This document shows positions 18,706 through 54,732 of a stretch of 64,000 nucleotides of DNA, in pieces (position 1 is the stretch's first letter; the number at the start of each line of letters is the position of its first letter). The stretch is from IMG/VR virus record IMGVR_UViG_3300019458_000020, positions 1 through 64,000 of that record; one strand, 5' to 3'. Position numbers and translations under genes: made by a program. The notes under the pieces were generated by a model that had not been told where the DNA came from, searched no databases, and worked only from the letters and a program-made list of their open reading frames with translations.

Positions 18706-19209
18706 TTAAGCTACCGGTGCAGTAGGGGCCGGTGGTGTTGCGGCTGCCGGTGCTGGTGTAGGTTCACCCGTAGGAATGGTATCGGATTCGTAACGAGCCA
18801 TTCTCTCAAGAATATTTTCAAGTTTTTCATATTCAGGAAACTCTGAAAATCTCGATTGAATTCCTTCTCCATTGTTTGCATTTTTTACTGTTCTAACAAA
18901 AATAACAGGCATCGTATGAGACGGAGAAAAATAAACACTTTCTACTACATCAATATCATTATCCGTAATATAATGTCTCGTGTATGCATGATGATTGGCA
19001 TCCCATTTGAATCCGAATAATTCCAATGAATCTAAGTGGAGTTGTTCTGTAGCCTGCTGACCATCGACGATTTGGGGGACAGGGAATTTCATTTTCATAA
19101 ATCCCAATTCCTTCAACGTCTCAATTTGGTCTTCGGTAAAAGCATCCATTCCTTTCAATACTTCACGAATGGTTTCTTTTATTAATGCTTTAATCTCATG
19201 TTTTTTCAT
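18706..19209 (-). CDS. Hypothetical protein with shared helical leader (putative internal head protein)
   Basis: N-terminus MKKHEIKALIKETIREVL. Confidence 0.65.
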   Translation of the reverse strand: MKKHEIKALIKETIREVLKGMDAFTEDQIETLKELGFMKMKFPVPQIVDGQQATEQLHLDSLELFGFKWDANHHAYTRHYITDNDIDVVESVYFSPSHTMPVIFVRTVKNANNGEGIQSRFSEFPEYEKLENILERMARYESDTIPTGEPTPAPAAATPPAPTAPVA

Positions 19210-19210
19210 A

Positions 19211-19477
19211 TTATTTCTTGAATCCTAATCCGGCCACGTCACCTATTCCAGCTATGAATTTTCCGATCTTATCACTCCAATTAGCATTTCGTGCAGACCT
19301 CCATCCGTGTTTAAATCCAGCTTTAAATTCTTCAGACATGTGTGAATAGTCTCCGGCTTCTCCCTTTAGATGGTCGTTCATTCCTTGTCTAAATCCTTTT
19401 TTGTATTCGTTGGATTTTCCAGATAAATCAGTAGTAATTATCTCTTTAATGACTTGTTTAAGTTCATCCCTCTTCAT
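19211..19477 (-). CDS. Hypothetical protein with shared helical leader
   Basis: N-terminus MKRDELKQVIKEII; two Y/F-x-x-G-F-x-x-G repeats. Confidence 0.65.
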   Translation of the reverse strand: MKRDELKQVIKEIITTDLSGKSNEYKKGFRQGMNDHLKGEAGDYSHMSEEFKAGFKHGWRSARNANWSDKIGKFIAGIGDVAGLGFKK

Positions 19478-19481
19478 ATCA

Positions 19482-20270
19482 TTATTTTAATTTAGGTGTT
19501 TTCTTAGGATTTACTACCAATTTTTTATCAACCTTATGTTTCAGAGGCTTGACTTTGTTCTCAGTTTCCTTGAAATCTCTTTGGTGCTTGATATCCTTTT
19601 CATCTACCGTTTTCATTGGTTGATTTGGCTGGTCTTCATCCTTTTTGACTGCCTTCTCATTGTAATCTTTTTCATCGTTTTTGGTGTCGCCGACTTCTTT
19701 TCTTTTTGGCTTATTATGTTGTGGCAAATCACTCTTGTCTGATTTATCTTCCAAATGGTTCATCGCCTTTTCTCTTGCTTGGTCCACCTTCGTATCCTCT
19801 ACATCTTGGAAATTAGCTTTTACAAAATTCTTTACTTGTTCCCACGTCAAGGCTATGGCACGAACTCGGTCATCGAGATTTACCATTGCTTCAATGTTGA
19901 ACATGTCTTCGGCAGTTTGAGAAATACGAACACGGAGTAGCGGCTTTGCATCTACATTTAAATCGTTATGGTCATCCCAATAAACCAAAAAATCTTTATC
20001 AATTTCTTTTACAATTTTACTAAGTTGATCCATCATTTCGGCTCTAGTTGCATCCAATCGTTCGTTACCCGTTTTCTTATATCCCTTATCGATGGTTTCT
20101 TTTTCTTCTTTGGTTGGTTCGGGTTTTGTTACGTTGGTTATTTCAGATAAAACCTTCTTGACAATTTTTCGTAACGACTCCTTGACAACTTGTTTTTTAG
20201 ACGTGGCTCTCTCGGTTAGGACTTCATCCCAAGATTCTCTTACAAGTTTTTTTAATTGGTCTTTATTCAT
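19482..20270 (-). CDS. Hypothetical charged protein with two leader-like helices
   Basis: MNKDQLKKLVRESWDEVLTE and VKESLRKIVKKVLSE; K/D/E-rich tail. Confidence 0.7.
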   Translation of the reverse strand: MNKDQLKKLVRESWDEVLTERATSKKQVVKESLRKIVKKVLSEITNVTKPEPTKEEKETIDKGYKKTGNERLDATRAEMMDQLSKIVKEIDKDFLVYWDDHNDLNVDAKPLLRVRISQTAEDMFNIEAMVNLDDRVRAIALTWEQVKNFVKANFQDVEDTKVDQAREKAMNHLEDKSDKSDLPQHNKPKRKEVGDTKNDEKDYNEKAVKKDEDQPNQPMKTVDEKDIKHQRDFKETENKVKPLKHKVDKKLVVNPKKTPKLK

Positions 20271-20288
20271 ATTTATCTCCGATATGAG

Positions 20289-20296
20289 TATAAATA
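20289..20296 (-). promoter_or_regulatory. TATTTATA putative late promoter
   Basis: 18 nt upstream of ATG 20270. Confidence 0.6.
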
Positions 20297-20304
20297 TTAC
20301 AAAG

Positions 20305-21078
20305 TCAACTAAAAAACGGATTTTCGGTCTTATTATCGACTTTGATTTCCTCTATTTGTTCCTTATAGATAGTATCTTTTGGATAGGGTAAAAATGGGTG
20401 TTTTAGATTGGCTAATATTTTCTTCTTTTCGACCTTATTTCCCAATAAATACACATATCGATGTTTGGTGGATTCTTTTTTCCTCCAGAACGTTTTACCG
20501 ATGGTCTTTTTCAAATGTTCTACGTTATGAGAACCATAAGTGGAAAAGGCGGTTCTTGAATGCATCCATTTATACGGTGGCCCGATTTCTGAAATAGAAT
20601 AATTAGGCATTAAAGCTAATGAAGAATTCCCTTGATAGTAAAATCCTGAAGCCTGATAGATGGTTCCTCTGTGACCTTGTTCATTATCAGCATAACTTAT
20701 TACGGCTTTAACGTTAGGAAGATGCTTTGTCAACATCGATAAAGTCTTTGATATACAATAACTTTCTATATTTTTGCCGTATCCATCATAAATGACTAAT
20801 CGGGTTAATTCCGTAACTTGTTCCAAGGTTATGAGTGGAGATATAGATTCGGCTGCACTTCTTCCAACCGGGCCGCCGTAGATGACTGTTCCGATTAATT
20901 TTTCCTCATTGCCTTCAATGAATTGGGAGGGAGTTTTTGTATTAATGAAGATACCAAAAGCCACATCACATAGGGTCCATTTGTGACTATAATGATTTTT
21001 TTCGACAAATGATTTACCTATATCTTTAGGAATTACCCGTATTGACACGAGTGATGTATCGACATAACCTTCTTCCAT
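20305..21078 (-). CDS. Mom-family adenine-modification-like GNAT protein
   Basis: FVEKNHYSH, LIG..IYG.P, ELTRL, ESYCISK, VISYAD..QGHRGTIYQASGF.Y.G, KHRYVY. Confidence 0.85.
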   Translation of the reverse strand: MEEGYVDTSLVSIRVIPKDIGKSFVEKNHYSHKWTLCDVAFGIFINTKTPSQFIEGNEEKLIGTVIYGGPVGRSAAESISPLITLEQVTELTRLVIYDGYGKNIESYCISKTLSMLTKHLPNVKAVISYADNEQGHRGTIYQASGFYYQGNSSLALMPNYSISEIGPPYKWMHSRTAFSTYGSHNVEHLKKTIGKTFWRKKESTKHRYVYLLGNKVEKKKILANLKHPFLPYPKDTIYKEQIEEIKVDNKTENPFFS

Positions 21079-21092
21079 AACTTCTTTTAAAG

Positions 21093-21389
21093 TTACACCA
21101 GTTTGGATTCCAACAAAAGATTTTTTAATTCGGTTTCGTTTTTATATATTACCAGCTTAATGTGAGGGTGGACGCTTTGGATATAATTCTTTAAAAACGT
21201 TGTTAGTGAAACCGACCCGTTCTGATGAATGAATCCTATACTACATGCATCTACTTTACCCATATTTACATCCAACAAAAAACTTTTATAGTCGTTATAT
21301 GCATTTGTTACACATTTAACAGAGGATATTGTTGATTTTACATTGTTTTTTTCGTCGAAGATGAAAGCTTTTAATTTTGGAGTATTCAT
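21093..21389 (-). CDS. Hypothetical protein
   Basis: 98-aa ORF in the operon. Confidence 0.55.
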   Translation of the reverse strand: MNTPKLKAFIFDEKNNVKSTISSVKCVTNAYNDYKSFLLDVNMGKVDACSIGFIHQNGSVSLTTFLKNYIQSVHPHIKLVIYKNETELKNLLLESKLV

Positions 21390-21394
21390 TGTTG

Positions 21395-21763
21395 TTACTT
21401 GTTTTCCAACTCGGAAATCCGGGTTTTTTGACGAAGAATTTCTTCTTCATTGATAGAGTTTTGTTTGTTAAGGAGAGTGATTTCTCCCTCACAACGTTCC
21501 AATAACTCTTTAGTATGAGTGAGTTCAATAGTCATCGACTCAATTTTTTTCTTATACTCCGAAACTTCTTCTTGAGACTTTTCTAGTTCTTCCCAAATTT
21601 CCTTCCTCATTTGAGCTTCCGCATTAGTCACCGACTCTATTGCTCTTACCTGCATATCCGTCATTAGTTTCATCTGTTGTAATCTAACTCGTTTATTAGC
21701 AATAAAATACGTAACAATCATTGTTATTAGAGCCGGTATAATCGTTGCTAATAATTCCATCAT
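21395..21763 (-). CDS. Membrane-anchored coiled-coil protein
   Basis: N-terminal TM helix and long E/K coiled coil; late motif upstream. Confidence 0.6.
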   Translation of the reverse strand: MMELLATIIPALITMIVTYFIANKRVRLQQMKLMTDMQVRAIESVTNAEAQMRKEIWEELEKSQEEVSEYKKKIESMTIELTHTKELLERCEGEITLLNKQNSINEEEILRQKTRISELENK

Positions 21764-21796: not shown

Positions 21797-21804
21797 TATA
21801 AATA
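21797..21804 (-). promoter_or_regulatory. TATTTATA putative late promoter
   Basis: 33 nt upstream of ATG 21763. Confidence 0.55.
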
Positions 21805-21833: not shown

Positions 21834-24800
21834 TTAAGATTTTGGTTTGATTTCGCAAACATCATTGCTGCAAAACCTTTCTACGTCCGCTTCTTCGTGT
21901 TTTATTCCTTTAAACCTCACAGGTTTTAATTTAGAGGATAGTTCATCGTAAGTTTCAATAGAAATGGTTTCGTAGGGCATCTGTTCGTATGCACCCTTTT
22001 CTGTAATAGGCAAAAATGAAATACCTTTTAGTTGATATTGATAGAAATTTAAAAGATGTTTGATTTGGTTCGCTTCATCCTTTCTAAAAGAAATGGTACA
22101 TGAAACTTGATTGTCTGCCCAATATCTTTGTAAGAACGCTGCCAGTGCAGCTTGTTCCCATATACTTACATCTTTAACTGGTCTTAGATTATCACCAATC
22201 TTGACAGGAATTTCTACAACAACAGTGGTATCTTCCGACCCCTTACAATCTTCGATGTGATATCCGGCTTCTTTTAATGGTCCAACTAAATCACTATATT
22301 TTGAAAGTCGCATTCTCCTTATGTAACAAACATTTTCTGGAAAATGAACGCCGGGGGTCGCACCGGCGACCAAACTCACCGTTCCACTTGGTTTGATAGA
22401 AGTCTTCTTTATACTTTTTGGTATGGCTAACCAATCGGAATATACTTCATCATAATACTCAATTTTTTTGTATCCCTTTTCGCACCATGTTTTAAATTCG
22501 TCTATTCCACGGTTAGCTAAAAATTGAACTATACCACTCATACTACAACCTATTCTTCTATTTCTTAACATTACTCTATTAGTTTCCGGCCAATGAGTTT
22601 GACCCAACGTCACTGTCTTGGCATACAAATATGCATATTTAAGTGTAACGAGAAAATCATCAAGATTTTCATGATTATTTGGGAATGTTTCAACTAAGCA
22701 GCATAATTCATAGCTTTCCAATGATTGTTCGAGACAATTGATTATTATAATCCCATCTACTTGATTATCAGAAACTTGTGTAATAATTGAATAATTATAA
22801 TTATCATCTACTGTAATGTTATATACATCTTCTTTTTCTGATAAAAATGTCACCGATTTAACTCGATGATTGTATCCTTTTTCTTTTTCAATTAATTCTT
22901 TGTAGCTTTTTAGAACGTAAGGATTTTCGGTTTTAAGAGATTCTGGATTTCTTATTCTAAAAGAAATTTTTCTATTTCGGCATTCTCTTTCCCATTCTTT
23001 CTTTAAAGGATTCCTATCCAAAGATTGTTTCAAGTCTTTGAATATCATAATTTGTTGATGTAATGTGTCTCTTTGTTTATTCTCAAAGTGGATCTTCTGC
23101 CCCTCTTTTCTAAATTTGATTTGTCCTTCGTGTTTATTTTGACATGAATGTGAACAAAATACAACATGGCGACTTCCCCAAGATACTATCATTTCATCAT
23201 TACATGTAATACATTTCTTCTTTGCAAACATTCGTTCGTTTACCCAAACTGTTTCTAAATCTGTCTTTTTTGATTGTTCTATATAGTATTCTTTATCCCA
23301 TTCTTTTTTATTTTTTTTCATTTTTGATGAATATAGTTCTCTACATTCGTCAGTATGAGAATTGGACAATCTTTTTAAATACTCTACATCTTTGCATCTT
23401 TCTTTCGTTTTTTCTCCAATTAATTTTTTCGATTCTTCCGTATGTTGTCTTCCAAACATAGGATTGTTTTCTCCTTGATTATCGTGGTCAGCATGAAATT
23501 TACAATGATCCTTAAATGTCATTAATTCTAGGTTATCTATAGAATTATTTAATCCATTATAATCTTTGTGATGAACAACTATTCCACCTTTACACCACCC
23601 ATTTGATTTCGATTCATTATATAGTTCGTTCCATTTTTCTGGATTGTGAAATTTAACAATTAAACGATGTTCCATTTCTCTTTTCCTTTTTACATCATTT
23701 GTATCCATGCTTACAATATAATATTTATTAGGATTATCCTTAAACATCTTTTCTTTTCTTTTTTGAAATCTTGGAAGAGAGTCTCCAATTTTTAAATCTT
23801 TAGCACGACACGTTTCTCCATTTAATAAAATCATTTTGTGGTCTGGAGTGACTCTTAATTTTCCTCCTTCTTCAAATTCTATTTCTACCAATTCTGCATT
23901 TTCTCTAGTCTTTCTTGGATTTCTTCCCCACTTTATTTCTACCATTCCACTTTTATTCATAGAATATACTGCAACATCATTTCCTTCTTCTGCTAATTCT
24001 TTTATAGAAACTGCATTTCTTCCGTCTGCAACTGCAATGAGAGTGTCTCCGGTTAAACAAGGATTACCCCCTTCAACCCGATGGTCTTTGTGGTCCATTC
24101 CATTATTCATCCTTGAATATCCTTTCATATTTTCCAACCAAGCATATCCCGGCTCACCATTTACTTTAGTTCTCTCGGCAGCATTGGAATAATCCATTCC
24201 CAAATCACAAAAGATAGAATTGTTTGATGTCCATCCATATTCAGACCGATGTGGATTCTTTTTATAATTTTTTAAATCCAAATATTCTTCTGAGTTGTAG
24301 TCACCAAATACAATTTCAGCCGTTCTTCTTACATTTCCAGCAACAACACACTTTCCAATAAGATTCATAACATCAACAATAGTAGTTGTTGTTATTAGGT
24401 GTCCTACATTTTTATCAAAAATTACACGAAGGGTTTTATGAAGTTCAATCAAGGGTTGAGAACCGGATGAAACACCACCGAACCCTTTAATTGGTTCGCC
24501 CGCGGCTCTTATTAATGAATAATCGAAATGAACTTCCTTGGTTTCAAGTAGATAGGATTCGATTAAAAGTTTTGTTGATTCGACCCAACCCTCTCTCGTA
24601 TCAGCAATTTTATAAATATTGTCGGGTGATGGGCTTGGTTTCCCTACTTTAATTTTCCCTGACCCTTTACAATCAAATCCAACACCAACACCCAACATTG
24701 ACATATCCATCAAAAAACAGAATGATTTTGACACATCCTCTTTTATGGTTGAGGTCGAAACGAATGCACAGTTATTTAGTGCGGCATATAAATGTCTTTC

Positions 24801-25133
24801 TTCGGTTATGGGGCTTCCCATCGACCACAATCCTCTTCCGGGAGGAAGAAATTTCATATTGAACATTCTATCATACATCTCTTGGGCAGATTTTTGAGCC
24901 TTTATTGAATTCCATCCAAGTTTATGTTGTTCAATCCATACCTTTTGCATGTTGAACGTTCCTTCTACTACTCGTTGAATTGTTTCCCACCATCTTTCAT
25001 TATCTCCATTGGCTTTCAAACGGGAGTATGTTCTTAAATAAACTAATGCACCTAGTCCATTGAATCCGAACGGTGGTTTTTGTCTTTTATATTTATCGAG
25101 GAAGCTATCAGTCAGCCGAAATTTACCATTCAT
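21834..25133 (-). CDS. nrdJ: Class II (adenosylcobalamin-dependent, RTPR-type) ribonucleotide reductase, intein-containing
   Basis: RTYSR, PPGRGLW, LNNCAF, GVGVGF, VVAGNVRRTA, GEPG, NP[intein]CLEQSL, TSIKPSGTVS, DNQVSCT, C-terminal CSNDVC. Confidence 0.95.
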   Translation of the reverse strand: MNGKFRLTDSFLDKYKRQKPPFGFNGLGALVYLRTYSRLKANGDNERWWETIQRVVEGTFNMQKVWIEQHKLGWNSIKAQKSAQEMYDRMFNMKFLPPGRGLWSMGSPITEERHLYAALNNCAFVSTSTIKEDVSKSFCFLMDMSMLGVGVGFDCKGSGKIKVGKPSPSPDNIYKIADTREGWVESTKLLIESYLLETKEVHFDYSLIRAAGEPIKGFGGVSSGSQPLIELHKTLRVIFDKNVGHLITTTTIVDVMNLIGKCVVAGNVRRTAEIVFGDYNSEEYLDLKNYKKNPHRSEYGWTSNNSIFCDLGMDYSNAAERTKVNGEPGYAWLENMKGYSRMNNGMDHKDHRVEGGNPCLTGDTLIAVADGRNAVSIKELAEEGNDVAVYSMNKSGMVEIKWGRNPRKTRENAELVEIEFEEGGKLRVTPDHKMILLNGETCRAKDLKIGDSLPRFQKRKEKMFKDNPNKYYIVSMDTNDVKRKREMEHRLIVKFHNPEKWNELYNESKSNGWCKGGIVVHHKDYNGLNNSIDNLELMTFKDHCKFHADHDNQGENNPMFGRQHTEESKKLIGEKTKERCKDVEYLKRLSNSHTDECRELYSSKMKKNKKEWDKEYYIEQSKKTDLETVWVNERMFAKKKCITCNDEMIVSWGSRHVVFCSHSCQNKHEGQIKFRKEGQKIHFENKQRDTLHQQIMIFKDLKQSLDRNPLKKEWERECRNRKISFRIRNPESLKTENPYVLKSYKELIEKEKGYNHRVKSVTFLSEKEDVYNITVDDNYNYSIITQVSDNQVDGIIIINCLEQSLESYELCCLVETFPNNHENLDDFLVTLKYAYLYAKTVTLGQTHWPETNRVMLRNRRIGCSMSGIVQFLANRGIDEFKTWCEKGYKKIEYYDEVYSDWLAIPKSIKKTSIKPSGTVSLVAGATPGVHFPENVCYIRRMRLSKYSDLVGPLKEAGYHIEDCKGSEDTTVVVEIPVKIGDNLRPVKDVSIWEQAALAAFLQRYWADNQVSCTISFRKDEANQIKHLLNFYQYQLKGISFLPITEKGAYEQMPYETISIETYDELSSKLKPVRFKGIKHEEADVERFCSNDVCEIKPKS
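22737..24059 (-). mobile_element. Intein (441 aa) with HNH endonuclease, NUMOD3 and zinc finger
   Basis: Starts CLTGDTLI after GGNP; block B VTPDH; HNH EHRL..VHHKDYNGLNNSIDNL; GENNPMFGRQHTEESK; block F DVYNITV; ends IIIIN before +1 Cys. Confidence 0.93.
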
Positions 25134-32652: not shown

Positions 32653-32660
32653 TATAAATA
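32653..32660 (-). promoter_or_regulatory. TATTTATA putative late promoter
   Basis: 16 nt upstream of ATG 32636. Confidence 0.6.
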
Positions 32661-42499: not shown

Positions 42500-42507
42500 T
42501 ATAAATA
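42500..42507 (-). promoter_or_regulatory. TATTTATA putative late promoter
   Basis: 18 nt upstream of ATG 42481. Confidence 0.6.
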
Positions 42508-43611: not shown

Positions 43612-44559
43612 TTATATTTGACCCGAAATCCGTTTGTTTAATTCCTGTCTTTGCTTTTCAAGATCAGGTATAACATCTCTTCTCATTCTCTCTACATCCC
43701 TTTTCTTGTAGTCAAGTTCTTTTTTCTTTGTAGCTAAATCTCTTTCAGTGGCTTGTTTTTCTTTTTGTGCATTAATTTTAGCTTGTGCAGTATCTTTAGC
43801 TCTTTGTTCCGAACTGTAATCAGGTTCATCCAATCCAATCTCTATCCCACTAGGCGTTGCAGATAGCGGAGGATCACCCATTAATTCCAAAATACATTCT
43901 CTTACTAAATTAGTAATGTATTCTTTCATATCAGGTTTAGAGGGCTTAAAATTTACATCTTGTGAAGAAAATTTATCTACCAAGAGTCTAAAAAGGCTTG
44001 GGTCGAACCAACCGAATACCCATTGAAAGAATTTTCTTTTATTGTCTTCGGATTGTGTTTTTGCTCCTAATGCGTTTCTTATATCGGTAGAGTTTACTTC
44101 CTTCCCATCTACCTTAGCATCTTCTACAAAGATGACATATCCATGTTTTCTTCCTACTTCCATGTTGTTTTTATTTGATTCGTAAGGTTGAAAATATGAC
44201 TCTGTTCCCTTGCCTGTTAACCACACTTCTTTTCCGTTTTTTTGTCCAACGGAAATTATAAATCTAGGTTTATCTTTGTTGCTGACAGCAAATACAATTG
44301 CAGCATCAGGATATTTTTGAACAACTTCAACCGGAGAATATCCATTTTTTACTTTGATAACATGACTTGAAGGGATTCCATGTTTTACCCATATTGCTTC
44401 TTTTTCTGCAAAGGATAAAGGAAAATGAGTCGGCTCTACTTTATCCGAAGAAACAATAAATGTATCAGGACCAACCACACTTTTTAATTTGTTATAAATA
44501 GACAAATGTCCTTTATGTGGTGGTTGAAATCGTCCGTTGTATATTCCTATTGTTTTCAT
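43612..44559 (-). CDS. Cytidylyltransferase-like (HxGH) nucleotidyltransferase with C-terminal coiled coil
   Basis: IGIYNGRFQPPHKGH, PLSF.EK, NSTDIR; internal KEYITNLVRECILE helix. Confidence 0.8.
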   Translation of the reverse strand: MKTIGIYNGRFQPPHKGHLSIYNKLKSVVGPDTFIVSSDKVEPTHFPLSFAEKEAIWVKHGIPSSHVIKVKNGYSPVEVVQKYPDAAIVFAVSNKDKPRFIISVGQKNGKEVWLTGKGTESYFQPYESNKNNMEVGRKHGYVIFVEDAKVDGKEVNSTDIRNALGAKTQSEDNKRKFFQWVFGWFDPSLFRLLVDKFSSQDVNFKPSKPDMKEYITNLVRECILELMGDPPLSATPSGIEIGLDEPDYSSEQRAKDTAQAKINAQKEKQATERDLATKKKELDYKKRDVERMRRDVIPDLEKQRQELNKRISGQI

Positions 44560-45341
44560 TATGACACGTAATTCGTGAGTTCATATCTTCCAGTAGGCAT
44601 TCTGTAAATGCTTATATGGAGATATTTCTTGGTCGGCTTGCCCTTATATTGTAAAAGTTTGTAATGGGTATCCTTATGTTGTTCATATCCAATGCCACCA
44701 TACATATATGGTTGACGAATACCGTATTTGTCGGCTTCGCTTTGTTTATGTTCACTTGGGTCAATAACAATCTTGTTACTTTCAATGAACTGTTCAACCG
44801 CTGCTAGTGTTTCAGAAAGATTTTCGTAGAAGGGTTTATTTGTTTCAGTGACCGGGTCTTTCTCAGGTTGTGGTTTAATTATTGCATGACTATAACCCAA
44901 ATTTTCTCTAATTAAAGACTTGATGATTTCTTTCAATTCTTCTACGGATATTTTTGATTCTCGGATATCAGCCCAAGTGAGTCTATCAGGACCATTCGTT
45001 TCATAGTCGCCGATTCCTTGATCATCATCGTAGTGATATCGAGATGCTTTAACATATCCTTGTATGTTTCCCACTTCGTAAAAATTGTAATTGGCTTGGG
45101 CCACATCTTTTGCTACTTGATCTACATCTTCCTCAGTTTCTAAATCCATTCTTCCTTCACCATATTCGTAACGAATAAATAAAACTTCATCGCCTTGAAC
45201 TCTTTTTTCCACGGCAATCCATTGATAGTTGTTTCCTTGAGTTGGGTAAAACGCAATGAATTCGCCTTCTTTAATTTTATAAATAAGACCTAAAATGTCA
45301 TCTGGCGATTTTGACGGAAGTGGCTTAATTTCTCTATTCAT
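44559..45341 (-). CDS. Hypothetical two-domain protein with internal leader-like helix
   Basis: IRESKISVEELKEIIKSLIRE; C-terminal IYRMPTGRYELTNY. Confidence 0.7.
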   Translation of the reverse strand: MNREIKPLPSKSPDDILGLIYKIKEGEFIAFYPTQGNNYQWIAVEKRVQGDEVLFIRYEYGEGRMDLETEEDVDQVAKDVAQANYNFYEVGNIQGYVKASRYHYDDDQGIGDYETNGPDRLTWADIRESKISVEELKEIIKSLIRENLGYSHAIIKPQPEKDPVTETNKPFYENLSETLAAVEQFIESNKIVIDPSEHKQSEADKYGIRQPYMYGGIGYEQHKDTHYKLLQYKGKPTKKYLHISIYRMPTGRYELTNYVS

Positions 45342-45348: not shown

Positions 45349-45356
45349 TATAAATA
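45349..45356 (-). promoter_or_regulatory. TATTTATA putative late promoter
   Basis: 7 nt upstream of ATG 45341. Confidence 0.6.
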
Positions 45357-46698: not shown

Positions 46699-46706
46699 TA
46701 TAAATA
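46699..46706 (-). promoter_or_regulatory. TATTTATA putative late promoter
   Basis: 40 nt upstream of tube ATG 46658. Confidence 0.6.
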
Positions 46707-46782: not shown

Positions 46783-48339
46783 ATGAATAAAGAACCGATT
46801 ATTAAAAAATGTGAAGTCTGTGATAAGGATTATGAAATTCCACATCGAAAAAGGAGCAAAGCGTCTCAACGGAGATTTTGTTCTAAGTCATGTTCTAATA
46901 GAAGTCCCGATGTTTTAGAAAAAATACAACGTAACAAGTTACTTACATATAGGAAAAAATATGGCGTGGATCACCCAATGAAAACCAAAGAAGTTGTTTC
47001 TAATTTTAAGTCATCTATGAAGGAAAAATATGGGATAGAACATGCTTTACAGTCGTCGATTTTTTTACAAAAATCCAAAGATACTAAATTAGAAAAATAT
47101 AGTGATGAAAATTTTAATAATGTAGAAAAGATGAAAAAAACATGTTTGGATAAGTATGGTGTAGAAAATTATGTTTTAACAGATGAGTATAAGGAAAAAA
47201 CAAAACAGACTTGTTTAGAAAAATACAACGTAGAATTTCCTTCACAAGCAAATTCATATAAGGAAAAATACAAAAATACAATTTTTGATAGATTTTTATC
47301 ATCTGGAAGATTCGATAATTTTACTCCATTATTTGATATAAAAGAATACAACGGTGTTCTTAAAAATAAAAAATATGAATTTAAATGTGATAGATGTGAT
47401 CAGACAGTTTTGTGTAATTTAAATGATGGCAGGTTTCCATTTTGTTTCAAATGTGACAAAGATGACACTTCATACGGTCAAAAGGAAATATACGATTTCT
47501 TAAAAGAAGAATTGGGAAACGATGTAACAATTTTAACAAACGAACGAACTATTTTATATCCTAAAGAAATAGATATTTATATACCTTCATTAAAACTAGC
47601 CATCGAATTCAATGGAACATATTGGCATTGTGAATTAACAGGAAATAAAAATAAAACGTATCATCTTAATAAATCAAATAAATGTATATCTAAAGAAATT
47701 CGTTTACTTCATATTTTTGAATACCACTGGATAAAAAATAAAGAAATAGTGAAATCTATATTAAGAAATAAAATAAATGTTACAAAAAATAAAATATATG
47801 CTAGAAATTGTTTTATTAAATCCGTAGATATGCATGATTGTATCGAGTTTCTTGACAACAATCACATTCAGGGACGTGATAAAAGTAGTTTTAAATACGG
47901 ATTATACTATGATGATGAGTTAATATCCATTATGACTTTTTGTAAATCCAGATTTGATAAAAAATATGAATATGAAATGTCACGTTTTTGTAATAAATTA
48001 AATCTATCTGTGATTGGTGGATCATCCAAACTTTTTAGTTATTTTATTAACAACCAAAATCCAAAATCTATAGTGACATACTGTGATAGAAAATATTTTG
48101 ATGGTTCTGTTTATAGTAATTTAGGGTTCACCTTTGTAGGCCATACACCACCAAATTATTATTATGTTAATCAAGAACACACTGAATTATTTAATAGAAT
48201 GTCTTTTCAAAAACACAGACTCCAGAAAAAATTATTTTCCTTCGATAAAAATCTATCTGAGTGGCAAAATATGAAAAATAACGGATTTGATAGAATATGG
48301 GATTGTGGAAACTCTAAGTGGGTATGGAAGATAAATTAA
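46783..48339 (+). CDS. Hef-like homing endonuclease: Zn finger + KYG repeats + PD-(D/E)xK + GNAT-like C-terminal domain
   Basis: CEVC..FCSKSC; five KY(G/S/N) repeats; EIDIYIP...AIEFNGTYWH; FL..NHIQG, EMSRFC, TYCDR, IWDCG. Start moved to ATG 46783. Confidence 0.8.
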   Translation: MNKEPIIKKCEVCDKDYEIPHRKRSKASQRRFCSKSCSNRSPDVLEKIQRNKLLTYRKKYGVDHPMKTKEVVSNFKSSMKEKYGIEHALQSSIFLQKSKDTKLEKYSDENFNNVEKMKKTCLDKYGVENYVLTDEYKEKTKQTCLEKYNVEFPSQANSYKEKYKNTIFDRFLSSGRFDNFTPLFDIKEYNGVLKNKKYEFKCDRCDQTVLCNLNDGRFPFCFKCDKDDTSYGQKEIYDFLKEELGNDVTILTNERTILYPKEIDIYIPSLKLAIEFNGTYWHCELTGNKNKTYHLNKSNKCISKEIRLLHIFEYHWIKNKEIVKSILRNKINVTKNKIYARNCFIKSVDMHDCIEFLDNNHIQGRDKSSFKYGLYYDDELISIMTFCKSRFDKKYEYEMSRFCNKLNLSVIGGSSKLFSYFINNQNPKSIVTYCDRKYFDGSVYSNLGFTFVGHTPPNYYYVNQEHTELFNRMSFQKHRLQKKLFSFDKNLSEWQNMKNNGFDRIWDCGNSKWVWKIN

Positions 48340-50357
48340 ATCTTTTGGTCAATAAAGACCTCCAAGTGGTCAAGGGCATATCCTTTTGATAATCGGTTTG
48401 GATTCATTCCTTGAGATTTTGCATCCGTGGCCATCTTATGTAATTCCTTCTTGAACGCTTCCCTAAAGGTTGCCATATCGGTTTTAACCCACTCATTTTT
48501 TCTATCTAACACGTTTTCTTCCTTAACGTGACTTCCGAGATGATGCCAAATCGGTCCACTATAAGAGAATTTCTTTCGATAGTCGTTATTGTATAAGAAT
48601 GATGTATATTTTTCATCATAATCTATATCATCGTCATCATTGAATCCTTTATTTTTCCTTGAAAATGACCACGCACCGTTTGGTTTGTCTGTCATCGATA
48701 GATAGTCAGGGTGTTTGTTTGTTATTACATTTCCATTCTTGTCTCTGATGTAAGTAATTCTTTGTCTCTGACCCTTTCCTCGTTTCTTTGGGTCAACAAA
48801 TTCACTACCACCTAACAACAATTTTTCAATATACGGCCAGACAAAAGCGTAAATTCCCCTCTTCGATGGAGGTCCATGAAATGTGGTAGGCGGTCCTTTG
48901 TATCCTTTTTGTTTTGTTAAACTAAGACCACCAAAAGTAACAAACTCCATTTTTTTATCTTTAAATGGATTATGTTTTCCTTCAGCAACTTTTCTACCCC
49001 ACGTTATGTATGGGTCATGCATTCTAAATTTATCCATATCTGACATGTGCATTGACGAACGGTGTTTTACTATATTTTTACCTGTTTTTGTTTTAATCCA
49101 ATCTGACACTGAATCTTTTACATCGGAACTTGGATTTCCCCACCAAAAAATAAAATCAGAGTCTTCTCTCCATCTATCATCATTCCTATTATATCCTGGA
49201 ACCTGCTGATGCGTCATAGTTTCACTATCTGATGATATAGCTTTTACATGTAAATCATCATCAACTAGACCAATCCATATACGTGTTCCTTTTGATTCTT
49301 TGTAAAATGATTTTTTGTATTCTGGATGTTTTAAATCAAATGCAGCATCTTTTGGATGTGGAATTAAATACTCTTCCGGAGTATATTTTTTCTTTATGGT
49401 TTTTGAATATTTAGGGTTTTCTTCTCCTGATAAATTAAACTGAACGATGGTAGGGTCAAGGACTGTTCCATCTTTTAATTCTATCCAAGTATGTTGATGT
49501 CTTCCTTGTCTAATAATATAACCTTCTACAACCCAAAAATCTTTCATACCCCTTTTTATTGCCTCTTCTGAAAATACTTTAGTAAATTCCATACAAACAC
49601 CAGATTTATCACAGTGTAATTTATCAGAGACTTCTTTAGCTAAATCGGTGTAATTTTTTTTTAAATCTACTGATTCTTTTAATGTAACTTCTTTATCATA
49701 TAACTGATTAGTTGCATCTTTTAATCTCTTTAAGTCACCAAAATTACGAAGAGCTTTAAACACAATGTTTTCGTTACTAAATTCCCCCTCTTTATTAAGT
49801 CCAGATTCACGATAAGCGGTTATTGATTTCATTAATGATTTCAATTTATCAACATCTTCCGTCTCGATAAATTTTGTTATTTGATCTTTTAACTGATGAT
49901 ACTTCTTTTTAATTTTTTCTTTATCTAATTCTATGTTTTCTCTTTTTGGTTCCTGTATCCATTCATCATGTAAAATAGAATAGATTCCTATGGATCTATT
50001 TGTGTCAGCAATATCTTGAAGATACACTTCAACTTTATGACCTTTAATGTCAATATTTTGGTGTTGAGTATTCCACTTAAAACCAAAATTATCCATTATC
50101 TTTCTTAGGTATTCTGGATTTATTTTCTCCTTGGAAGCATCAACTAATATATGAAGGTCTATATCACTTGTTGGGGTCCAGTTATAATTTGCTGCCGAAC
50201 CTAAAAAGTAAATATCTTGAATACCACCTTTAAGGTCCGTGGAATCATAAAAGTCCTTGGAGATTTTTAATAATCGTTTGCGAATCTCCGGTTTGAGTTT
50301 CATATCCTCATTCCAAAGATTCGGGTCTAACGTTTTATTGTAAACCCTAAGTTTCAT
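48336..50357 (-). CDS. Multidomain protein: Pol-beta-type nucleotidyltransferase + papain/transglutaminase-like domain + two unknown domains
   Basis: GSAANYNW...SDIDLH...EVY.QD; GVC..F...VEG...HTWIE..DG...DPT..QF; junctions at LKE, YKE and VAE. Confidence 0.75.
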   Translation of the reverse strand: MKLRVYNKTLDPNLWNEDMKLKPEIRKRLLKISKDFYDSTDLKGGIQDIYFLGSAANYNWTPTSDIDLHILVDASKEKINPEYLRKIMDNFGFKWNTQHQNIDIKGHKVEVYLQDIADTNRSIGIYSILHDEWIQEPKRENIELDKEKIKKKYHQLKDQITKFIETEDVDKLKSLMKSITAYRESGLNKEGEFSNENIVFKALRNFGDLKRLKDATNQLYDKEVTLKESVDLKKNYTDLAKEVSDKLHCDKSGVCMEFTKVFSEEAIKRGMKDFWVVEGYIIRQGRHQHTWIELKDGTVLDPTIVQFNLSGEENPKYSKTIKKKYTPEEYLIPHPKDAAFDLKHPEYKKSFYKESKGTRIWIGLVDDDLHVKAISSDSETMTHQQVPGYNRNDDRWREDSDFIFWWGNPSSDVKDSVSDWIKTKTGKNIVKHRSSMHMSDMDKFRMHDPYITWGRKVAEGKHNPFKDKKMEFVTFGGLSLTKQKGYKGPPTTFHGPPSKRGIYAFVWPYIEKLLLGGSEFVDPKKRGKGQRQRITYIRDKNGNVITNKHPDYLSMTDKPNGAWSFSRKNKGFNDDDDIDYDEKYTSFLYNNDYRKKFSYSGPIWHHLGSHVKEENVLDRKNEWVKTDMATFREAFKKELHKMATDAKSQGMNPNRLSKGYALDHLEVFIDQKI

Positions 50358-50365: not shown

Positions 50366-51310
50366 TTATTGAACACCTAAATAGCGTTCTGCATTAGCTA
50401 ATGACTCTTCATGACACGATGGGCAAAGAGTAGAAGATGTACCTGGATTTATTTTCTTTCCACATTTCATACATTTTCCGGTTTTTATAGCCAGTTTAAC
50501 CTTTTCTTGATGGTCATCTTTTTTATCTTCCTGAAGTTCATTATGCATTTTCAGTAATTCATCTGATAGTTTCTTAATCAATTCTAAATCTTGAATCACT
50601 GCTTGTTTACGATGAATACCTACCTGAGCAACACGATTTATATCTTTTATCAAATTAATTTCATGTTTTTCACTGTAACCATGTTCTTGTTCATGATCTT
50701 CGTTAATTATTTCACATAAAATACTAAGAATGTTTTCTTTTAATTTTGATGTAATTTCATCAGGCTTGCTACTAATACCATATTCTTTTCCCTTTGGCTG
50801 GGCACCCCAATAATGTAATTTTCCATGTTCTTCATTAACCGGAATGATATTAAGTTGTGGGTGTTTGGATTGAATTGCATCCATTTTTGTAGGATGTTGT
50901 GTAAATATCATTGCATCCTCTACTGATGGTTCATAACCTTTTTTAGTCAAATATTTACCATCTAATTTTCTTTGAACAATGTAATTCTCTCCACTTATTT
51001 CATTTTCCATTAAACCTAATTCTTTTTTACCATACATGGATGCGTATGCCGATTTTAGATCAACAGGAGAAGGTTTACCATCTATACGAAAATTTTTATT
51101 ATCTAATGGAACGTTATTTCTGACTTCAGGTTTCCCATCAGGCATTTGAACCGTAACGGTTGCTGTCTTTCCATCTTTACTGGGTTCGATGGTTAAAACC
51201 TTAAATGTTTTTGGTTGAAGACCTGTGGTCACGAGGGTTATCTTTGAATAGGTTTGTACACCCTTTGTATCCTTATCACCGCCACTTGTTATTTGAGATG
51301 TAGATATCAT
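50366..51310 (-). CDS. Hypothetical multidomain protein with C-terminal Zn ribbon
   Basis: LME, VNE, LKENILSILCEIINE and LQE sites; CMKC..CPSC. Confidence 0.65.
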   Translation of the reverse strand: MISTSQITSGGDKDTKGVQTYSKITLVTTGLQPKTFKVLTIEPSKDGKTATVTVQMPDGKPEVRNNVPLDNKNFRIDGKPSPVDLKSAYASMYGKKELGLMENEISGENYIVQRKLDGKYLTKKGYEPSVEDAMIFTQHPTKMDAIQSKHPQLNIIPVNEEHGKLHYWGAQPKGKEYGISSKPDEITSKLKENILSILCEIINEDHEQEHGYSEKHEINLIKDINRVAQVGIHRKQAVIQDLELIKKLSDELLKMHNELQEDKKDDHQEKVKLAIKTGKCMKCGKKINPGTSSTLCPSCHEESLANAERYLGVQ

Positions 51311-51813: not shown

Positions 51814-51821
51814 TATAAATA
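51814..51821 (-). promoter_or_regulatory. TATTTATA putative late promoter
   Basis: 3 nt upstream of ATG 51810. Confidence 0.5.
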
Positions 51822-51842
51822 TAAAGAAAGATATATAAGAAA

Positions 51843-51871
51843 TTGACGGAAGTTTTTTTGTTCTGTACTTT
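51843..51871 (+). promoter_or_regulatory. Sigma70-type promoter with no downstream sense ORF
   Basis: TTGACG-17 nt-TACTTT pointing into a GC-rich non-coding element. Confidence 0.5.
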
Positions 51872-52197: not shown

Positions 52198-52211
52198 AAA
52201 CTCTCATCTAA

Positions 52212-52219
52212 TATAAATA
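52212..52219 (-). promoter_or_regulatory. TATTTATA putative late promoter
   Basis: 14 nt upstream of ATG 52197. Confidence 0.55.
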
Positions 52220-52245
52220 TCAGGAAATAAAACCAATCGAAGAAC

Positions 52246-52869
52246 TTAATAGGTAAATTTCTTAAAAACAGAATACGGTTTATTCAAAGCTTTTAAGGCA
52301 ATTTCTACTTCTTTAAGACATTCATTTATTCCTCCACCTGTCAAAACAATATTGTTATATTGTTTCAAAAAATCCATCAAATCAGGAATATGAACACAGT
52401 CGGCCGCTGCCTGTAATAATGTATAAACTTCTTTCTTATCTATACGTCTATACTGTCTTAAATATTTTGCCCACATTTCTCTATCCATATCTCGTGAATC
52501 ACGAATGTTATTTTCATACATGAATCTTACAAAGTTAGCGACAGAATCTTCATCAATACTGTTATCCATACAATACCTAAAGAAAGCATAACCCTTATCG
52601 TAGAAAATTGAGGTATCTAAAACACTTTCGTCTAAAGCGTTGTCTAATAACCACGTCTTATAGTCTTGTTCGGACACCATTCCCATTGTGTCTTCTCCAT
52701 TATACAAGAAAATAATTTTGTAAGCTTCGTTATCTATACTGTTTAACCACTCACACCATTCGTGAGGTTTAAAAAATATTCCACCTTCATATTCTGGTTG
52801 AATATCAACATTCATTATAACTTTTCCCGAAAAAGATTCTTCTATTATAATGGATTTAAGAGAAGTCAT
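52246..52869 (-). CDS. Isochorismatase/nicotinamidase-like cysteine hydrolase fold protein with short leader
   Basis: IMNVDIQPEY and VLTGGGINECL; probable start MTSLKSIIIEE at 52869 (track start 52887). Confidence 0.55.
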   Translation of the reverse strand: MTSLKSIIIEESFSGKVIMNVDIQPEYEGGIFFKPHEWCEWLNSIDNEAYKIIFLYNGEDTMGMVSEQDYKTWLLDNALDESVLDTSIFYDKGYAFFRYCMDNSIDEDSVANFVRFMYENNIRDSRDMDREMWAKYLRQYRRIDKKEVYTLLQAAADCVHIPDLMDFLKQYNNIVLTGGGINECLKEVEIALKALNKPYSVFKKFTY

Positions 52870-53350
52870 TATAATTTTTTCCCTCATTATTTAAATCAAT
52901 GATTCTTTTTATTTCATTACCAGAATGTTGAATCAATGCTTTTAATCCAAAATGTAATGGATGTGGCCATTGTCCATATTCTACCCATTTATATTTGTCC
53001 GTTTCCCAATTTAAACGGGGGTCAAATTCGTCATCAACAATGGCCAAAAAATTATGATATTTAAATCCAGATTGTTTATCTTCATAAACATAAAGAGGAA
53101 TAAGTTTTTCAATGATTCCTCTATATCCTACTTCTTCAGTGGCTTCTCTTTTTACAGCCTTAGCAGGATTTTCACCTGAATCTATAGCGCCGCCCCACAC
53201 TCCCCAAGTCCCTGGTTGTAACACCATCATAGAACGGAGTGGTAACAATAACCTACCAGTGGTTTTCGCCATAAAAATACATCCAGCACCCTGTTTTCCC
53301 CAGAATCCGGTTCTTGATAAGGCACCACCATGTAGTTCGTCGTTACTCAT
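52856..53350 (-). CDS. Nudix hydrolase
   Basis: Nudix box GGAIDSGENPAKAVKREATEEVG. Confidence 0.92.
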   Translation of the reverse strand: MSNDELHGGALSRTGFWGKQGAGCIFMAKTTGRLLLPLRSMMVLQPGTWGVWGGAIDSGENPAKAVKREATEEVGYRGIIEKLIPLYVYEDKQSGFKYHNFLAIVDDEFDPRLNWETDKYKWVEYGQWPHPLHFGLKALIQHSGNEIKRIIDLNNEGKNYNDFS

Positions 53351-53352
53351 AA

Positions 53353-54732
53353 TTAAACATCTTCTATTTTTGTAACCCTATTCCAAGGTATTATATCACA
53401 GGAATAAATTTCATATCCTACACCAGAAGAATATAATTCCAATCCTTCGGTATTTATAGTTAAAATAACAAGAGGTTCATCCTCGTCAAATTTATCAGAA
53501 AGCCAGTTCATCAAGGCATCTTCAAGTGAAGCTCTATCATCAAAGAGATACACAGCTTTTGAACAAAATTTGGCAGGTCTATCGGGTTTAGGCAATATAC
53601 CATTAATTTTCATATTTGGTATATTCTTTTTTGGGGTTACATGATATACCACTTTAGGTTGAACAGTGATATTTTCTGCCACTAAATCTTTCCAACTACC
53701 AACCACATCTTGATCCCAATATAACACTTCAATTATATTTTTGTGTTTAAAAAATGGATGATTATAAATAAACTCTTCTGTCTTGGGATTATGATGTAGG
53801 GTGGATTCTTTTGTATCGTCTGTAACAAGAAGAGAAACATTATCACCCTCCACATACACCAACAAACAAACATAATTGTTATCTACCTTGTTTTTTAAGA
53901 ATTTCCTGACTTGATAATGATATGCTTTATCTCTATCCCAACCATAAGCATTGTTACCACTTAAAATTAATCCATATTGGTCATATTTAGTTATTTCTTT
54001 TATTTCTCTTGGTGTAGGATTTATAAAAACTTCTACATAATCCGACTTACCTGCTAAATTACTTTCAAATGAATCAAGAAATTTTTCTGATATGGTTCCA
54101 GTATTTACTATTCCCTTAGCCTGATAATCTCTTATGTCATCTAACGTAGATTCACCACCCTCAACGAACCAATGAGCCATAGAACCTAATCCATGAATAA
54201 AATTTAAAAGTTGGTCTATTTTTAAGAGTTGGCCTTCCGGAGTGTGTTCCAATTCCACAGATTTAGCCATTTTATATAATGTTCTACTTCTATCGCTGTA
54301 TCTTCCGTTCCCACCGGAACCAATTTCACCAAAATTTCTAACTAACTTAGAACCAGATTTATCTGAAATAAAAGTGAACCATCTTTCCCATTCTTCCTCG
54401 GTAATATCTTTATAATTCTCCTTTTCAAAGAAGCTATCTGCTAATACACCATCTTTTATATCACTGTTTATAAATAACTTAGATATCAAAACTCTTAAAA
54501 TATCCCATATCTTTTTTAAGGAAGATTCATCTACACGTCCATATTTTGCAAACTTCGCCCATATTAATTTTAAGTCTCTAGCAGGTACAAGTTTCCAAGA
54601 CTGATGTTTTTGACCAGAATGAAATTCAGACTTAACATCTTCTAAGATATCAATCCAATCATCATCGATAGTAGCATGTATTGATTCAACAATACATTTA
54701 TCTATTATCTTTTGAAGTTTTGATACTTTCAT
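53353..54732 (-). CDS. Multidomain protein with leader and C-terminal ADP-ribosyltransferase-fold (Tpt1/KptA-like) domain
   Basis: MKVSKLQKIIDKCIVE; junctions ISE and VAE; VYHVT...N.....NGILP...VYL...E...IP. Confidence 0.65.
   Translation of the reverse strand: MKVSKLQKIIDKCIVESIHATIDDDWIDILEDVKSEFHSGQKHQSWKLVPARDLKLIWAKFAKYGRVDESSLKKIWDILRVLISKLFINSDIKDGVLADSFFEKENYKDITEEEWERWFTFISDKSGSKLVRNFGEIGSGGNGRYSDRSRTLYKMAKSVELEHTPEGQLLKIDQLLNFIHGLGSMAHWFVEGGESTLDDIRDYQAKGIVNTGTISEKFLDSFESNLAGKSDYVEVFINPTPREIKEITKYDQYGLILSGNNAYGWDRDKAYHYQVRKFLKNKVDNNYVCLLVYVEGDNVSLLVTDDTKESTLHHNPKTEEFIYNHPFFKHKNIIEVLYWDQDVVGSWKDLVAENITVQPKVVYHVTPKKNIPNMKINGILPKPDRPAKFCSKAVYLFDDRASLEDALMNWLSDKFDEDEPLVILTINTEGLELYSSGVGYEIYSCDIIPWNRVTKIEDV

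Follow-up and report, generated by a model that had tools for sequence, protein, structure and literature searches.

Why should a phage place the same short helix at the start of proteins that otherwise have nothing in common? In this work we have examined this question in a giant uncultured T4-like phage, beginning with the first 64 kb of its 340-kb contig, the stretch of DNA which we call the window. The original prediction, made from the sequence alone, was that an amphipathic leader ending in I/L/V-x-E marks unrelated proteins in operons headed by a TATTTATW motif, that it can sit at the N-terminus or internally, and that it loads diverse enzymes into the prohead for ejection into the next host, as the capsid-targeting sequence (CTS) of phage T4 does for internal proteins. 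We found that the observation is real and more extensive than was first noticed. The interpretation as a capsid-targeting tag is partly supported: every computational test available here points its way, but packaging, cleavage and ejection are inferred from sequence.

Results

We first asked whether the leaders are where they had been placed, and all of the predicted peptides were present. Five of them are true N-termini of mutually unrelated proteins in late-promoter operons, and in four of these the core starts exactly at residue 6. Three of the proteins form a cassette on the minus strand. Its first gene encodes leader protein 3 (19482-20270, 262 aa), starting with MNKDQLKKLVRESWDEVLTE; the leader comprises residues 1-20 (nt 20211-20270), with h-x-E (hydrophobic, any residue, Glu) at 10-12, 14-16 and 18-20, it scores 19.1-19.4 bits with the external matrix described below, and homologues of the protein occur in the loci designated L149 and L150. 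Leader protein 2 (19211-19477, minus strand, 88 aa) starts with MKRDELKQVIKE, its leader being residues 1-12 (nt 19442-19477; 22.7 bits), and leader protein 1 (18706-19209, minus strand, 167 aa) starts with MKKHEIKALIKETIRE, its leader being residues 1-16 (nt 19162-19209; 26.4-26.7 bits). L149 has MKKHELKALIKEC.. in the place syntenic with protein 1. The mature parts are unrelated by BLAST, and proteins 1, 2 and 3 are singletons. The cassette is closed by an intrinsic-terminator-like hairpin of 11 pairs plus a T run (18664-18690, minus strand), which is followed by a sigma-70-like promoter for the CobS-like gene.

Leader protein 4 (53353-54732, minus strand, 459 aa) starts with MKVSKLQKIIDKCIVE. 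Its leader, residues 1-16 (nt 54685-54732), is followed by a conserved helical domain, a middle alpha/beta domain and a weakly ADP-ribosyltransferase-like (ART-like) C-terminus; this last assignment, which was part of the original prediction, rests on a weak transitive match (E 7e-5 against a 136-aa protein). Homologues of protein 4 carry either a 16-residue or a 10-residue leader. In the AlphaFold2 model the leader appears as a detached helix of low confidence (residues 5-16, pLDDT 33-40), followed by a linker and then by a confident domain. Leader protein 5 (52246-52869, minus strand, 207 aa) begins at the second Met, at 52869, of the reading frame 52246-52887, with the 10-residue leader MTSLKSIIIE (nt 52840-52869). 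Residues 8-207 are 58% identical to residues 214-414 of the homologous protein P0009, in which this domain is fused behind the protein-4 domain. The description of protein 5 as amidase-like, or isochorismatase-like, is only an Atlas lead.

The claim on the TATTTATW motif holds as well. In the sense orientation, TATTTAT[AT] precedes the operons starting at 20270, 45341, 51810, 52197 and 54732, and also the sheath, tube and tape-measure genes. The late-promoter-like motif at 20289-20296 (minus strand) reads TATTTATA on the gene strand, 19-26 nt before the ATG of protein 3, the same TATTTATA lies at 45349-45356 (minus strand) before protein 6, and the motif at 54738-54745 (minus strand), TATTTATT on the gene strand, ends 5 nt before the ATG of protein 4.

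The internal copies are a different matter. Only the one in protein 6 (44559-45341, minus strand, 260 aa), at residues 131-146 (nt 44904-44951), is significant, with 20.9 bits. The C-terminal half of this protein has stand-alone homologues which begin with the leader, P0011 (131 aa) and P0013 (114 aa), and the copy is an ancestral N-terminal leader made internal. The second motif of protein 3 (VKESLRKIVKKVLSE, residues 29-43, 20142-20186, minus strand) is present but lies below 8 bits, as do the motifs of proteins 7 and 8, and these three cannot be separated from ordinary amphipathic helices, the loose core occurring about once per 290 residues. Protein 7 (43612-44559, minus strand, 315 aa) is indeed a cytidylyltransferase-like HxGH nucleotidyltransferase (PF01467, residues 6-162), as had been predicted, but no homologue of its C-terminal part was found and its motif at residues 210-225 (nt 43885-43932) is not established as a tag. 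In protein 8 (50366-51310, minus strand, 314 aa) the motif at residues 188-204 (nt 50699-50749) lies inside a conserved domain of the family.

Could such a simple pattern arise by chance? We used three tests which had not been trained on the window. A pattern taken from T4 N-termini (M, 2-4 residues, then h..hh.[ED]) matched 14 of 94 N-termini, against about 1 expected from the internal rate, and its strict T4 form matched 7 against 0.26 expected (Poisson p about 1e-8). A position matrix built from 79 leaders of other IMG/VR contigs gave six hits of at least 15 bits in this genome, against 0.03 in shuffles. Lastly, a degenerate DNA pattern for the leader found more than 120 places in IMG/VR, a lower bound, mostly inside T4-like head and tail modules, whereas a scrambled pattern of equal degeneracy found 5. 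Of 80 IMG/VR leader loci, 44 contain head or tail markers of this clade.

In 112 kb of this genome about 24 proteins carry the leader, and their mature parts are mostly BLAST singletons. A motif equally common in early cytoplasmic proteins had been named beforehand as a refutation of the prediction, and this test was passed: the leader occurs on 23 of 81 genes in late or structural blocks against 1 of 46 elsewhere (Fisher p 1e-4), and not on replication or metabolic proteins. No leader was found on the sheath, tube, hub, neck, fibre or portal proteins.

The leader has two interchangeable forms. The 10-residue form is hydrophobic at positions 4, 7 and 8 with Glu at 10, and examples are MIKLKSLIKE, MIKLKNIIQE, MIKLSSILNE, MIRLKSLLQE and MTSLKSIIIE. 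The form of 16-20 residues (MKKSELKQIIKEEI..E) has the same core shifted by two residues and carries up to three h-x-E sites. One family may carry either form, so that orthologues swap them, and a domain which is fused in relatives has its own leader when it is encoded separately. Conserved domains start directly after h-x-E, with junctions, for example, between LNE and GKQVGTLYHFT and between EE and MSTTGA, which is only indirect evidence for cleavage after Glu. Selection acts at the amino-acid level, since Ser4 uses six codons from two codon families (TCN and AGY) and Leu6 uses all six Leu codons.

The same genome encodes a gp21-family prohead protease (PF03420, Peptidase_S77; 8306-8932 of the piece of the genome designated L288), which matches T4 gp21 at 30% identity (E 2e-18) with the His and Ser motifs, GELxHP and SSRGLG, conserved. 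A capsid protein of the T4 Gp23 family was also found. The protease is flanked by leader proteins, those of 157 and 336 aa lying directly before it, and outside the window a leader-tagged protein with a clear PARP domain lies before the large terminase TerL. In relatives the small genes around the protease carry the motif. The capsid protein of the closest relatives starts MSDIKSLLTE, whereas that of this genome starts MENVKQLLTN, with Asn at position 10. The putative scaffold, assigned by its position next to the capsid gene and by an N-terminus (..DMLKEAIADAK) resembling that of T4 gp22 (MLKEQLIAEA), has no detectable homology to gp22 (hhalign probability 5%).

Discussion

What, then, is the leader for? 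It is most likely, though far from certain, that it is the local version of the T4 CTS, an N-terminal propeptide. T4 N-termini read from NC_000866 give MKTYQEFIAE for IPII and IPIII, MAKINELLRE for gp24, MLKEQLIAE for gp22 and MNEPQLLIE for gp21, and in T4 residues 4 and 7 target the protein while residues 8 and 10 direct its processing (PMC9026906). The short leaders fit this template exactly. In this view each tagged protein would, late in infection, use its amphipathic helix to join the scaffolding core on which the prohead shell assembles. The Peptidase_S77 protease would then cut after a Glu in an h-x-E motif, the candidate sites being Glu10 of the short form and Glu12, Glu16 or Glu20 of the long form, and the mature protein would be released inside the head, stay with the DNA and enter the next host on ejection. 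The predicted cargo consists of small proteins of unknown function, ADP-ribosyltransferase-like proteins comparable to T4 Alt and, outside the window, a 2H-phosphoesterase (LigT/Acb1-like), a tRNA-ligase CPD-like protein and an acetyltransferase-lysozyme fusion. That enzymes of host-takeover type are transcribed together with virion genes from late-type promoters suits delivery into the next cell, as for Alt. Our analysis establishes that the leader exists, is modular and selected as protein, matches the T4 template, is confined (1 of 46 other genes apart) to late non-tail proteins and co-occurs with a gp21-type protease and head-module genes; binding to the core, cleavage, retention in the virion and ejection are inferences. 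Some observations speak against this view. The motif is a simple amphipathic helix, with a look-alike in TerL, the putative scaffold is not detectably homologous to gp22, and the capsid protein of this genome has Asn, not Glu, at position 10. About 24 tagged proteins in one third of the genome is far more than the roughly eight of T4, and a few leaders have Asp or Lys at the Glu position, where in T4 Asp blocks processing. No virion proteome or N-terminal sequencing was found for this phage or for its cultured relatives, Microcystis phage Mel-JY01 and the immuto phages of Flavobacterium.

Could the helix serve another purpose? It is possible, but in our view unlikely, that it is a general assembly or oligomerisation module, such as a coiled-coil or a chaperone-docking helix, which many late accessory proteins use without being directed into the capsid. 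The motif is a plain amphipathic helix, the TerL proteins of the clade have a look-alike near their N-terminus which belongs to the conserved terminase fold, several leader genes sit in neck and tail operons rather than head operons, and the putative scaffold shows no detectable homology to gp22. However, such a module does not explain the exact T4 spacing with a terminal Glu, the conserved junctions right after h-x-E, the motif on the capsid protein of relatives, the flanking of the protease or why a domain needs its own copy only when encoded separately, and bona fide tail and neck proteins lack it.

An amphipathic membrane-association signal, bringing late proteins to the inner membrane, for example for lysis, superinfection exclusion or envelope remodelling, appears improbable. 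N-terminal amphipathic helices often bind membranes, T4-type proheads assemble on the inner membrane (PMC9026906) and one tagged protein carries a lysozyme domain, but the helix is highly charged with a narrow hydrophobic face, the cargo includes ART-like and RNA-end-processing enzymes whose substrates are cytoplasmic, and membrane targeting predicts neither the conserved Glu nor the association with the protease gene. A Sec-type signal peptide, which has an uninterrupted hydrophobic core following a basic N-terminus, does not fit, since the sequence logo shows Lys or Glu every 3-4 residues and no hydrophobic stretch longer than two residues. Least likely of all is a feature of the nucleic acid, such as an AT-rich translation-initiation region or a recombination site for gene cassettes. 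The genomes are AT-rich, many proteins start with MK, and the conserved CTS region of T-even phages has also been discussed as a recombination site; however, the conserved residues are encoded by all synonymous codons, the leader DNAs within this genome differ at synonymous sites, the carrier loci range from 23 to 54% G+C, and highly expressed late structural genes lack the motif.

The closest parallel is the T4 system itself, with which this phage shares a short N-terminal peptide on otherwise unrelated proteins, its pattern, a gp21-family protease with tagged proteins encoded next to it and an ADP-ribosyltransferase, like Alt, among the tagged proteins. What differs is the consensus, (E)LKxhIKE against YQEFIAE, the longer form with up to three h-x-E repeats, one internal leader and the number of carriers, which amounts to 154 BLAST clusters across the relatives retrieved; unlike in T4, nothing has been shown experimentally. 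In the hypervariable internal-protein loci of T-even phages, diverse, fast-evolving small proteins also share only the leader and often occur in tandem clusters, as in the three-gene cassette at 18706-20270 and in the loci L107 and L126, but here the clusters are scattered through head, neck and separate late operons of a distant clade (Immutovirus and Mel-JY01 relatives) and the cargo includes multi-domain enzymes. The giant phages phiKZ, 201phi2-1 and SPN3US also load many proteins into the head and trim them with a gp21-related protease that cuts after Glu, although their propeptides are mostly longer than 100 residues and the cleavage motif is A/S/G-x-E (PMC5694885), whereas the leaders described here have 10-20 residues and I/L/V at P3, as in T4. 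The Dar anti-restriction proteins of phage P1 share the concept of counter-defence proteins carried in the capsid and injected with the DNA, but P1 uses ordered protein-protein incorporation that depends on Hdf and DarA, with no shared short leader and no homology.

Perhaps the leader marks a whole injected proteome. On this reading, which we offer as tentative and no better than an even chance, jumbo and mid-sized phages of the Immutovirus/Mel-JY01 clade would pre-load their heads with dozens of enzymes, among them several ADP-ribosyltransferases, RNA-end repair and 2H-phosphoesterase (Acb1-like) enzymes and an acetyltransferase-lysozyme fusion, each addressed by a tag of 10-20 residues that can be gained, swapped or made internal by fusion. 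The tag would then let the ejected effector repertoire of thousands of uncultured phages be read directly from sequence, and it could also serve as a packaging tag for engineering.

Results

The metagenomic contig whose first 64 kb we studied is 340,880 bp long (JGI Ga0187893_10000017). A second assembler produced a 340,916-bp version and IMG/VR holds a 250-kb piece. The two independent assemblies (JGI and ENA) end at almost the same positions, and it may therefore be that these are real genome ends rather than arbitrary breaks in a circular assembly. The DNA is about 35% G+C. The window carries tail genes, namely a 1056-aa sheath, a tube, a baseplate hub, a tape-measure-like protein and a gp25-like protein, together with CobS/CobT-like genes, a ribonucleotide reductase, a helicase, Hsp20, NUDIX and homing endonucleases. 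The nearest cultured relatives are Microcystis phage Mel-JY01 and the Flavobacterium immuto phages, with 43% identity in the sheath and about 54% in the capsid protein, whereas Rhodothermus phage RM378 is more distant. This is a distant T4-like jumbo phage, not a classical T-even phage or cyanomyovirus. A near-identity DNA search of cultured phages found no match, nor did tblastn searches of cultured phages with the leader proteins and with a 25-residue leader, and PHROGs and Pfam returned nothing for most of the tagged proteins.

Several other genes in the window stand out. A Mom-family protein (20305-21078, minus strand; PF25680, E 5e-43) suggests adenine modification of the phage DNA and lies in a late operon with a small transmembrane protein (21395-21763). 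A 673-aa protein in a late operon (48336-50357, minus strand) has a nucleotidyltransferase (NTP_transf_2 / Pol-beta-like) N-terminal domain and no leader, and its homologues lie near the sheath and tube genes in several relatives. A 448-aa protein next to the baseplate and tail genes (32682-34028, minus strand) gives a partial PHROG match to a DNA polymerase family (profile positions 954-1233 of 1445, E 9e-15) but no Pfam hit. Many homing endonuclease genes (HNH and GIY-YIG) are inserted among structural genes, at 46783-48339 (+) and 58163-58747 (-) in the window and at L003:6440-7174 and L286:15353-15922 (L numbers denote fetched loci), one of them between the capsid gene and the next operon.

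The observation on which this work is based held: all the peptides of the original prediction are at the places given for them. Five of them are N-termini, those of the proteins encoded at 18706-19209, 19211-19477, 19482-20270, 53353-54732 and, from the Met at 52869, 52246-52887. The first three genes form a compact cassette, in which a late-promoter-like motif is followed by the three genes and then by a terminator-like hairpin, after which comes a sigma-70-like promoter for the CobS-like gene. The mature parts of the tagged proteins are unrelated by BLAST. The late-promoter-like motif reads TATTTATA in the direction of transcription, which is the reverse complement of the T4 late promoter TATAAATA. 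It is found at 20289-20296, 21797-21804, 32653-32660, 42500-42507, 45349-45356, 46699-46706, 51814-51821, 52212-52219 and 58119-58126, and precedes the sheath, tube and tape-measure genes as well as the leader operons. In the window TATAAATA occurs 20 times against 9.5 expected, with 15 of the 20 on the plus strand.

To ask whether the leader is more than chance, we used tests that were not trained on the window. A pattern taken from T4 N-termini (M, 2-4 residues, then h..hh.[E/D]) matched 14 of 94 N-termini against about 1 expected, and the strict 10-residue T4 form matched 7 against 0.26 expected. A degenerate DNA pattern for the long leader found more than 120 places in IMG/VR, a lower bound, while a scrambled pattern with the same letters found 5. 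Nearly all of the real hits are true ORF starts, and they show conservation that the pattern did not ask for: Ser4, hydrophobic residues at 14, 17 and 18, and Glu at 16 and 20. A matrix built from those external leaders gave six hits of at least 15 bits in this genome against 0.03 in shuffles. The conserved residues use all synonymous codons and the carrier loci span 23-54% G+C; selection therefore acts on the peptide and not on the DNA. A looser regular expression also hit the N-termini of TerL and was replaced by the external matrix and the strict T4 template. The large terminase of the whole clade (L288:1098-2705 here, and the TerL genes of many relatives) begins with a leader-like helix, for example ..NLRDIIKEEYKKC..DP.YF, but this aligns with a conserved part of the terminase fold and is a trap for loose motif searches.

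The leader has two forms. The consensus of the long form is M-K-K-S-E-L-K-Q-h-I-K-E-E-h-x-E-h-L-x-E, with h-x-E (hydrophobic, any residue, Glu) at 10-12, 14-16 and 18-20. The short form has 10 residues, for example MIKLKSLIKE. The T4 proteins, read from NC_000866, begin with MKTYQEFIAE (IPII and IPIII), MAKINELLRE (gp24), MLKEQLIAE (gp22) and MNEPQLLIE (gp21). The short form has the same layout, hydrophobic at 4, 7 and 8 and Glu at 10. In T4, where these positions were mutated in IPIII, residues 4 and 7 carry targeting, residues 8 and 10 carry processing, and the first 10 residues are enough to package foreign proteins (PMC9026906, PMC3012670, PMC5694885).

The head genes of this genome were reached by walking along the contig. 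Four further loci of the contig were merged without any mismatch into 112,295 bases. These contain a Gp23-family capsid protein with a Glu-rich putative scaffold (L286:17724-19103) just before it, the large terminase TerL, an intein-containing T4-type portal and a Peptidase_S77 prohead protease. The protease matches T4 gp21 at E 2e-18, with the His and Ser-Ser motifs conserved. A profile comparison of the putative scaffold with T4 gp22 showed no detectable homology. The portal gene (L288:2757-5876, record about 106420-109539; 1039 aa) carries an intein with an HNH domain, and the 1099-aa reductase-like gene in the window (21834-25133) shares the intein-like segment (26% identity over about 300 residues).

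Leader proteins lie directly around these genes. A 157-aa protein (MDKVKLYALIKECVEEVLKE) and a 336-aa protein (MIRLKNLIKIQE) are encoded just before the protease, and a 318-aa protein (MIRLKSLLQE) just before TerL. The latter has a PARP catalytic domain scoring above Pfam's threshold and is the counterpart of T4 Alt, a packaged ADP-ribosyltransferase that also carries a propeptide. Proteins of 700, 129 and 220 aa are encoded downstream of the capsid gene in their own late-promoter operon. After its leader, the 129-aa protein (L286:11905-12294, record 84617-85006) continues ..VVE-TWGQ, while T4 gp21 has ..LIE-TWGQ at its own N-terminal site; this may be chance, or a preference on the far side of the cut. 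A further operon has at least seven consecutive genes whose products start with MIKLK.LI.E or a close variant, among them a tRNA-ligase CPD-like protein, an acetyltransferase-lysozyme fusion and a 2',5'-RNA-ligase/LigT/Acb1-like protein. A late-promoter operon at L086:7824-14807 (record about 70469-77452) looks like an RNA-end repair or counter-defence set: it opens with a 726-aa protein which combines poly(A)-polymerase/CCA-adding, acetyltransferase and HD domains and has no leader, and the leader-tagged CPD-like, acetyltransferase-lysozyme and LigT/Acb1-like proteins follow. The operon of at least seven genes and the others are preceded by the same TATTTAT[AT] motif as the sheath, tube and tape-measure genes.

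In the 112 kb, 23 of 81 genes in late or structural blocks carry a leader, but only 1 of 46 genes in the glycosyltransferase, replication and metabolic blocks, and that one is weak (Fisher p 1e-4). None of the sheath, tube, hub, neck, fibre or portal proteins has it, nor does the p276 homologue, the product of a conserved gene downstream of the portal. The leader is thus not a general late-gene feature. An even spread over the gene classes had been named beforehand as grounds for refutation, and the finding passed.

Of the 80 IMG/VR leader loci kept, 44 contain head, neck or tail markers of this clade within about 10 kb. In head-module loci fetched without regard to the leader, it recurs on the small genes between portal and capsid (families p178, p154 and p388) and on the gene after the capsid gene. 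It also occurs on the capsid protein of the closest relatives (MSDIKSLLTE). Across the fetched loci, 271 distinct leader proteins fall into 154 BLAST clusters. The cultured immuto phage (NC_055915) has clear examples, one of them next to its protease; the candidates are a 252-aa protein starting MKKSQLRQIIKE and a 73-aa protein starting MKKSQIVKAVQEVLEE, next to the protease.

The family of protein 4 (53353-54732) carries a 16-residue leader in some members and a 10- or 9-residue leader in others, and in every case it ends in h-x-E just before the conserved domain. Other families mix the two forms in the same way. In three homologues the protein-4 domain is fused to the domain of protein 5 (52246-52887), whereas in this genome protein 5 is a separate gene and has its own 10-residue leader, which is what a per-polypeptide address predicts.

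The internal copies of the motif held only in part. That of protein 6 (44559-45341) is significant, and the C-terminal half of this protein has stand-alone homologues which begin with this very leader. It is therefore an ancestral N-terminal leader that became internal when an N-terminal domain was added, and if the protease cuts there, the protein would be split. The motifs of protein 7 (43612-44559) and protein 8 (50366-51310) and the second motif of protein 3 (19482-20270) do not rise above the background of amphipathic helices. The motif of protein 8 lies inside a conserved domain, and a homologue search with the C-terminal part of protein 7 found nothing.

Of the proposed cargo identities, the HxGH nucleotidyltransferase in protein 7 is confirmed. 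The ADP-ribosyltransferase-like (ART-like) character of protein 4 rests on short matches linking its C-terminus to a 136-aa protein, which in turn links to the PARP-positive 318-aa protein. A jackhmmer search from the 136-aa protein found no family among the fetched loci, and only short pairwise matches link the four ART-like proteins. The AlphaFold2 model of protein 4 was mediocre (pTM 0.42) and gave no significant PDB fold match. The amidase-like assignment of protein 5 is only an Atlas lead to isochorismatase-like clusters, and its AlphaFold2 model was poor (pLDDT 44).

Discussion

In this work we asked whether a leader shared by otherwise unrelated late proteins could be a capsid-targeting signal. 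The original interpretation, a portable tag that loads diverse enzymes into the prohead, is partly supported. We consider it close to certain that the leader is a real, modular, peptide-level signal specific to late non-tail proteins of this clade. The best reading is a T4-type capsid-targeting propeptide system, in which the helix would dock the protein into the scaffolding core, the S77 protease would cut after Glu, and the mature protein would stay in the head and be injected. These latter steps are inferred from sequence alone, without proteomic data, and we regard this reading as more likely than not. The late transcription of enzymes of host-takeover and counter-defence type fits delivery into the next cell.

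This reading has weak points. The motif is simple, TerL has a look-alike helix, no homology is detectable between the putative scaffold and T4 gp22, and the number of carriers is unusually high. The rival explanations are a generic assembly helix, which we regard as unlikely, and a membrane helix or a feature at the nucleic-acid level, both of which we regard as very unlikely; codon use in the conserved residues speaks for selection on the peptide. Chance, a DNA-level repeat and a Sec signal were rejected.

The principle itself is known from T4, and reviews already suggest that the capsid-targeting sequence (CTS) lets T4-like phages load varied proteins (PMC9026906). In the literature searched, however, we found no description of this leader, of its two forms or of its breadth, and searches for the leader strings and for CTS in cyanophages or marine phages found nothing relevant. 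The T4 sequence has been studied almost only in T-even coliphages, with a handful of cargo proteins. If our reading holds, the same addressing logic operates in a large, mostly uncultured aquatic clade with a far larger and enzyme-rich cargo, and in the Flavobacterium immuto phages and Microcystis phage Mel-JY01 this clade has cultured relatives in which it is testable. The leader is also a candidate tag for protein packaging. A two-form leader next to a gp21-type protease would predict which phage proteins are delivered into the host at the moment of infection, including candidate anti-defence and host-takeover enzymes that are otherwise unannotatable ORFans, and it would explain why such enzymes are transcribed late together with virion genes.
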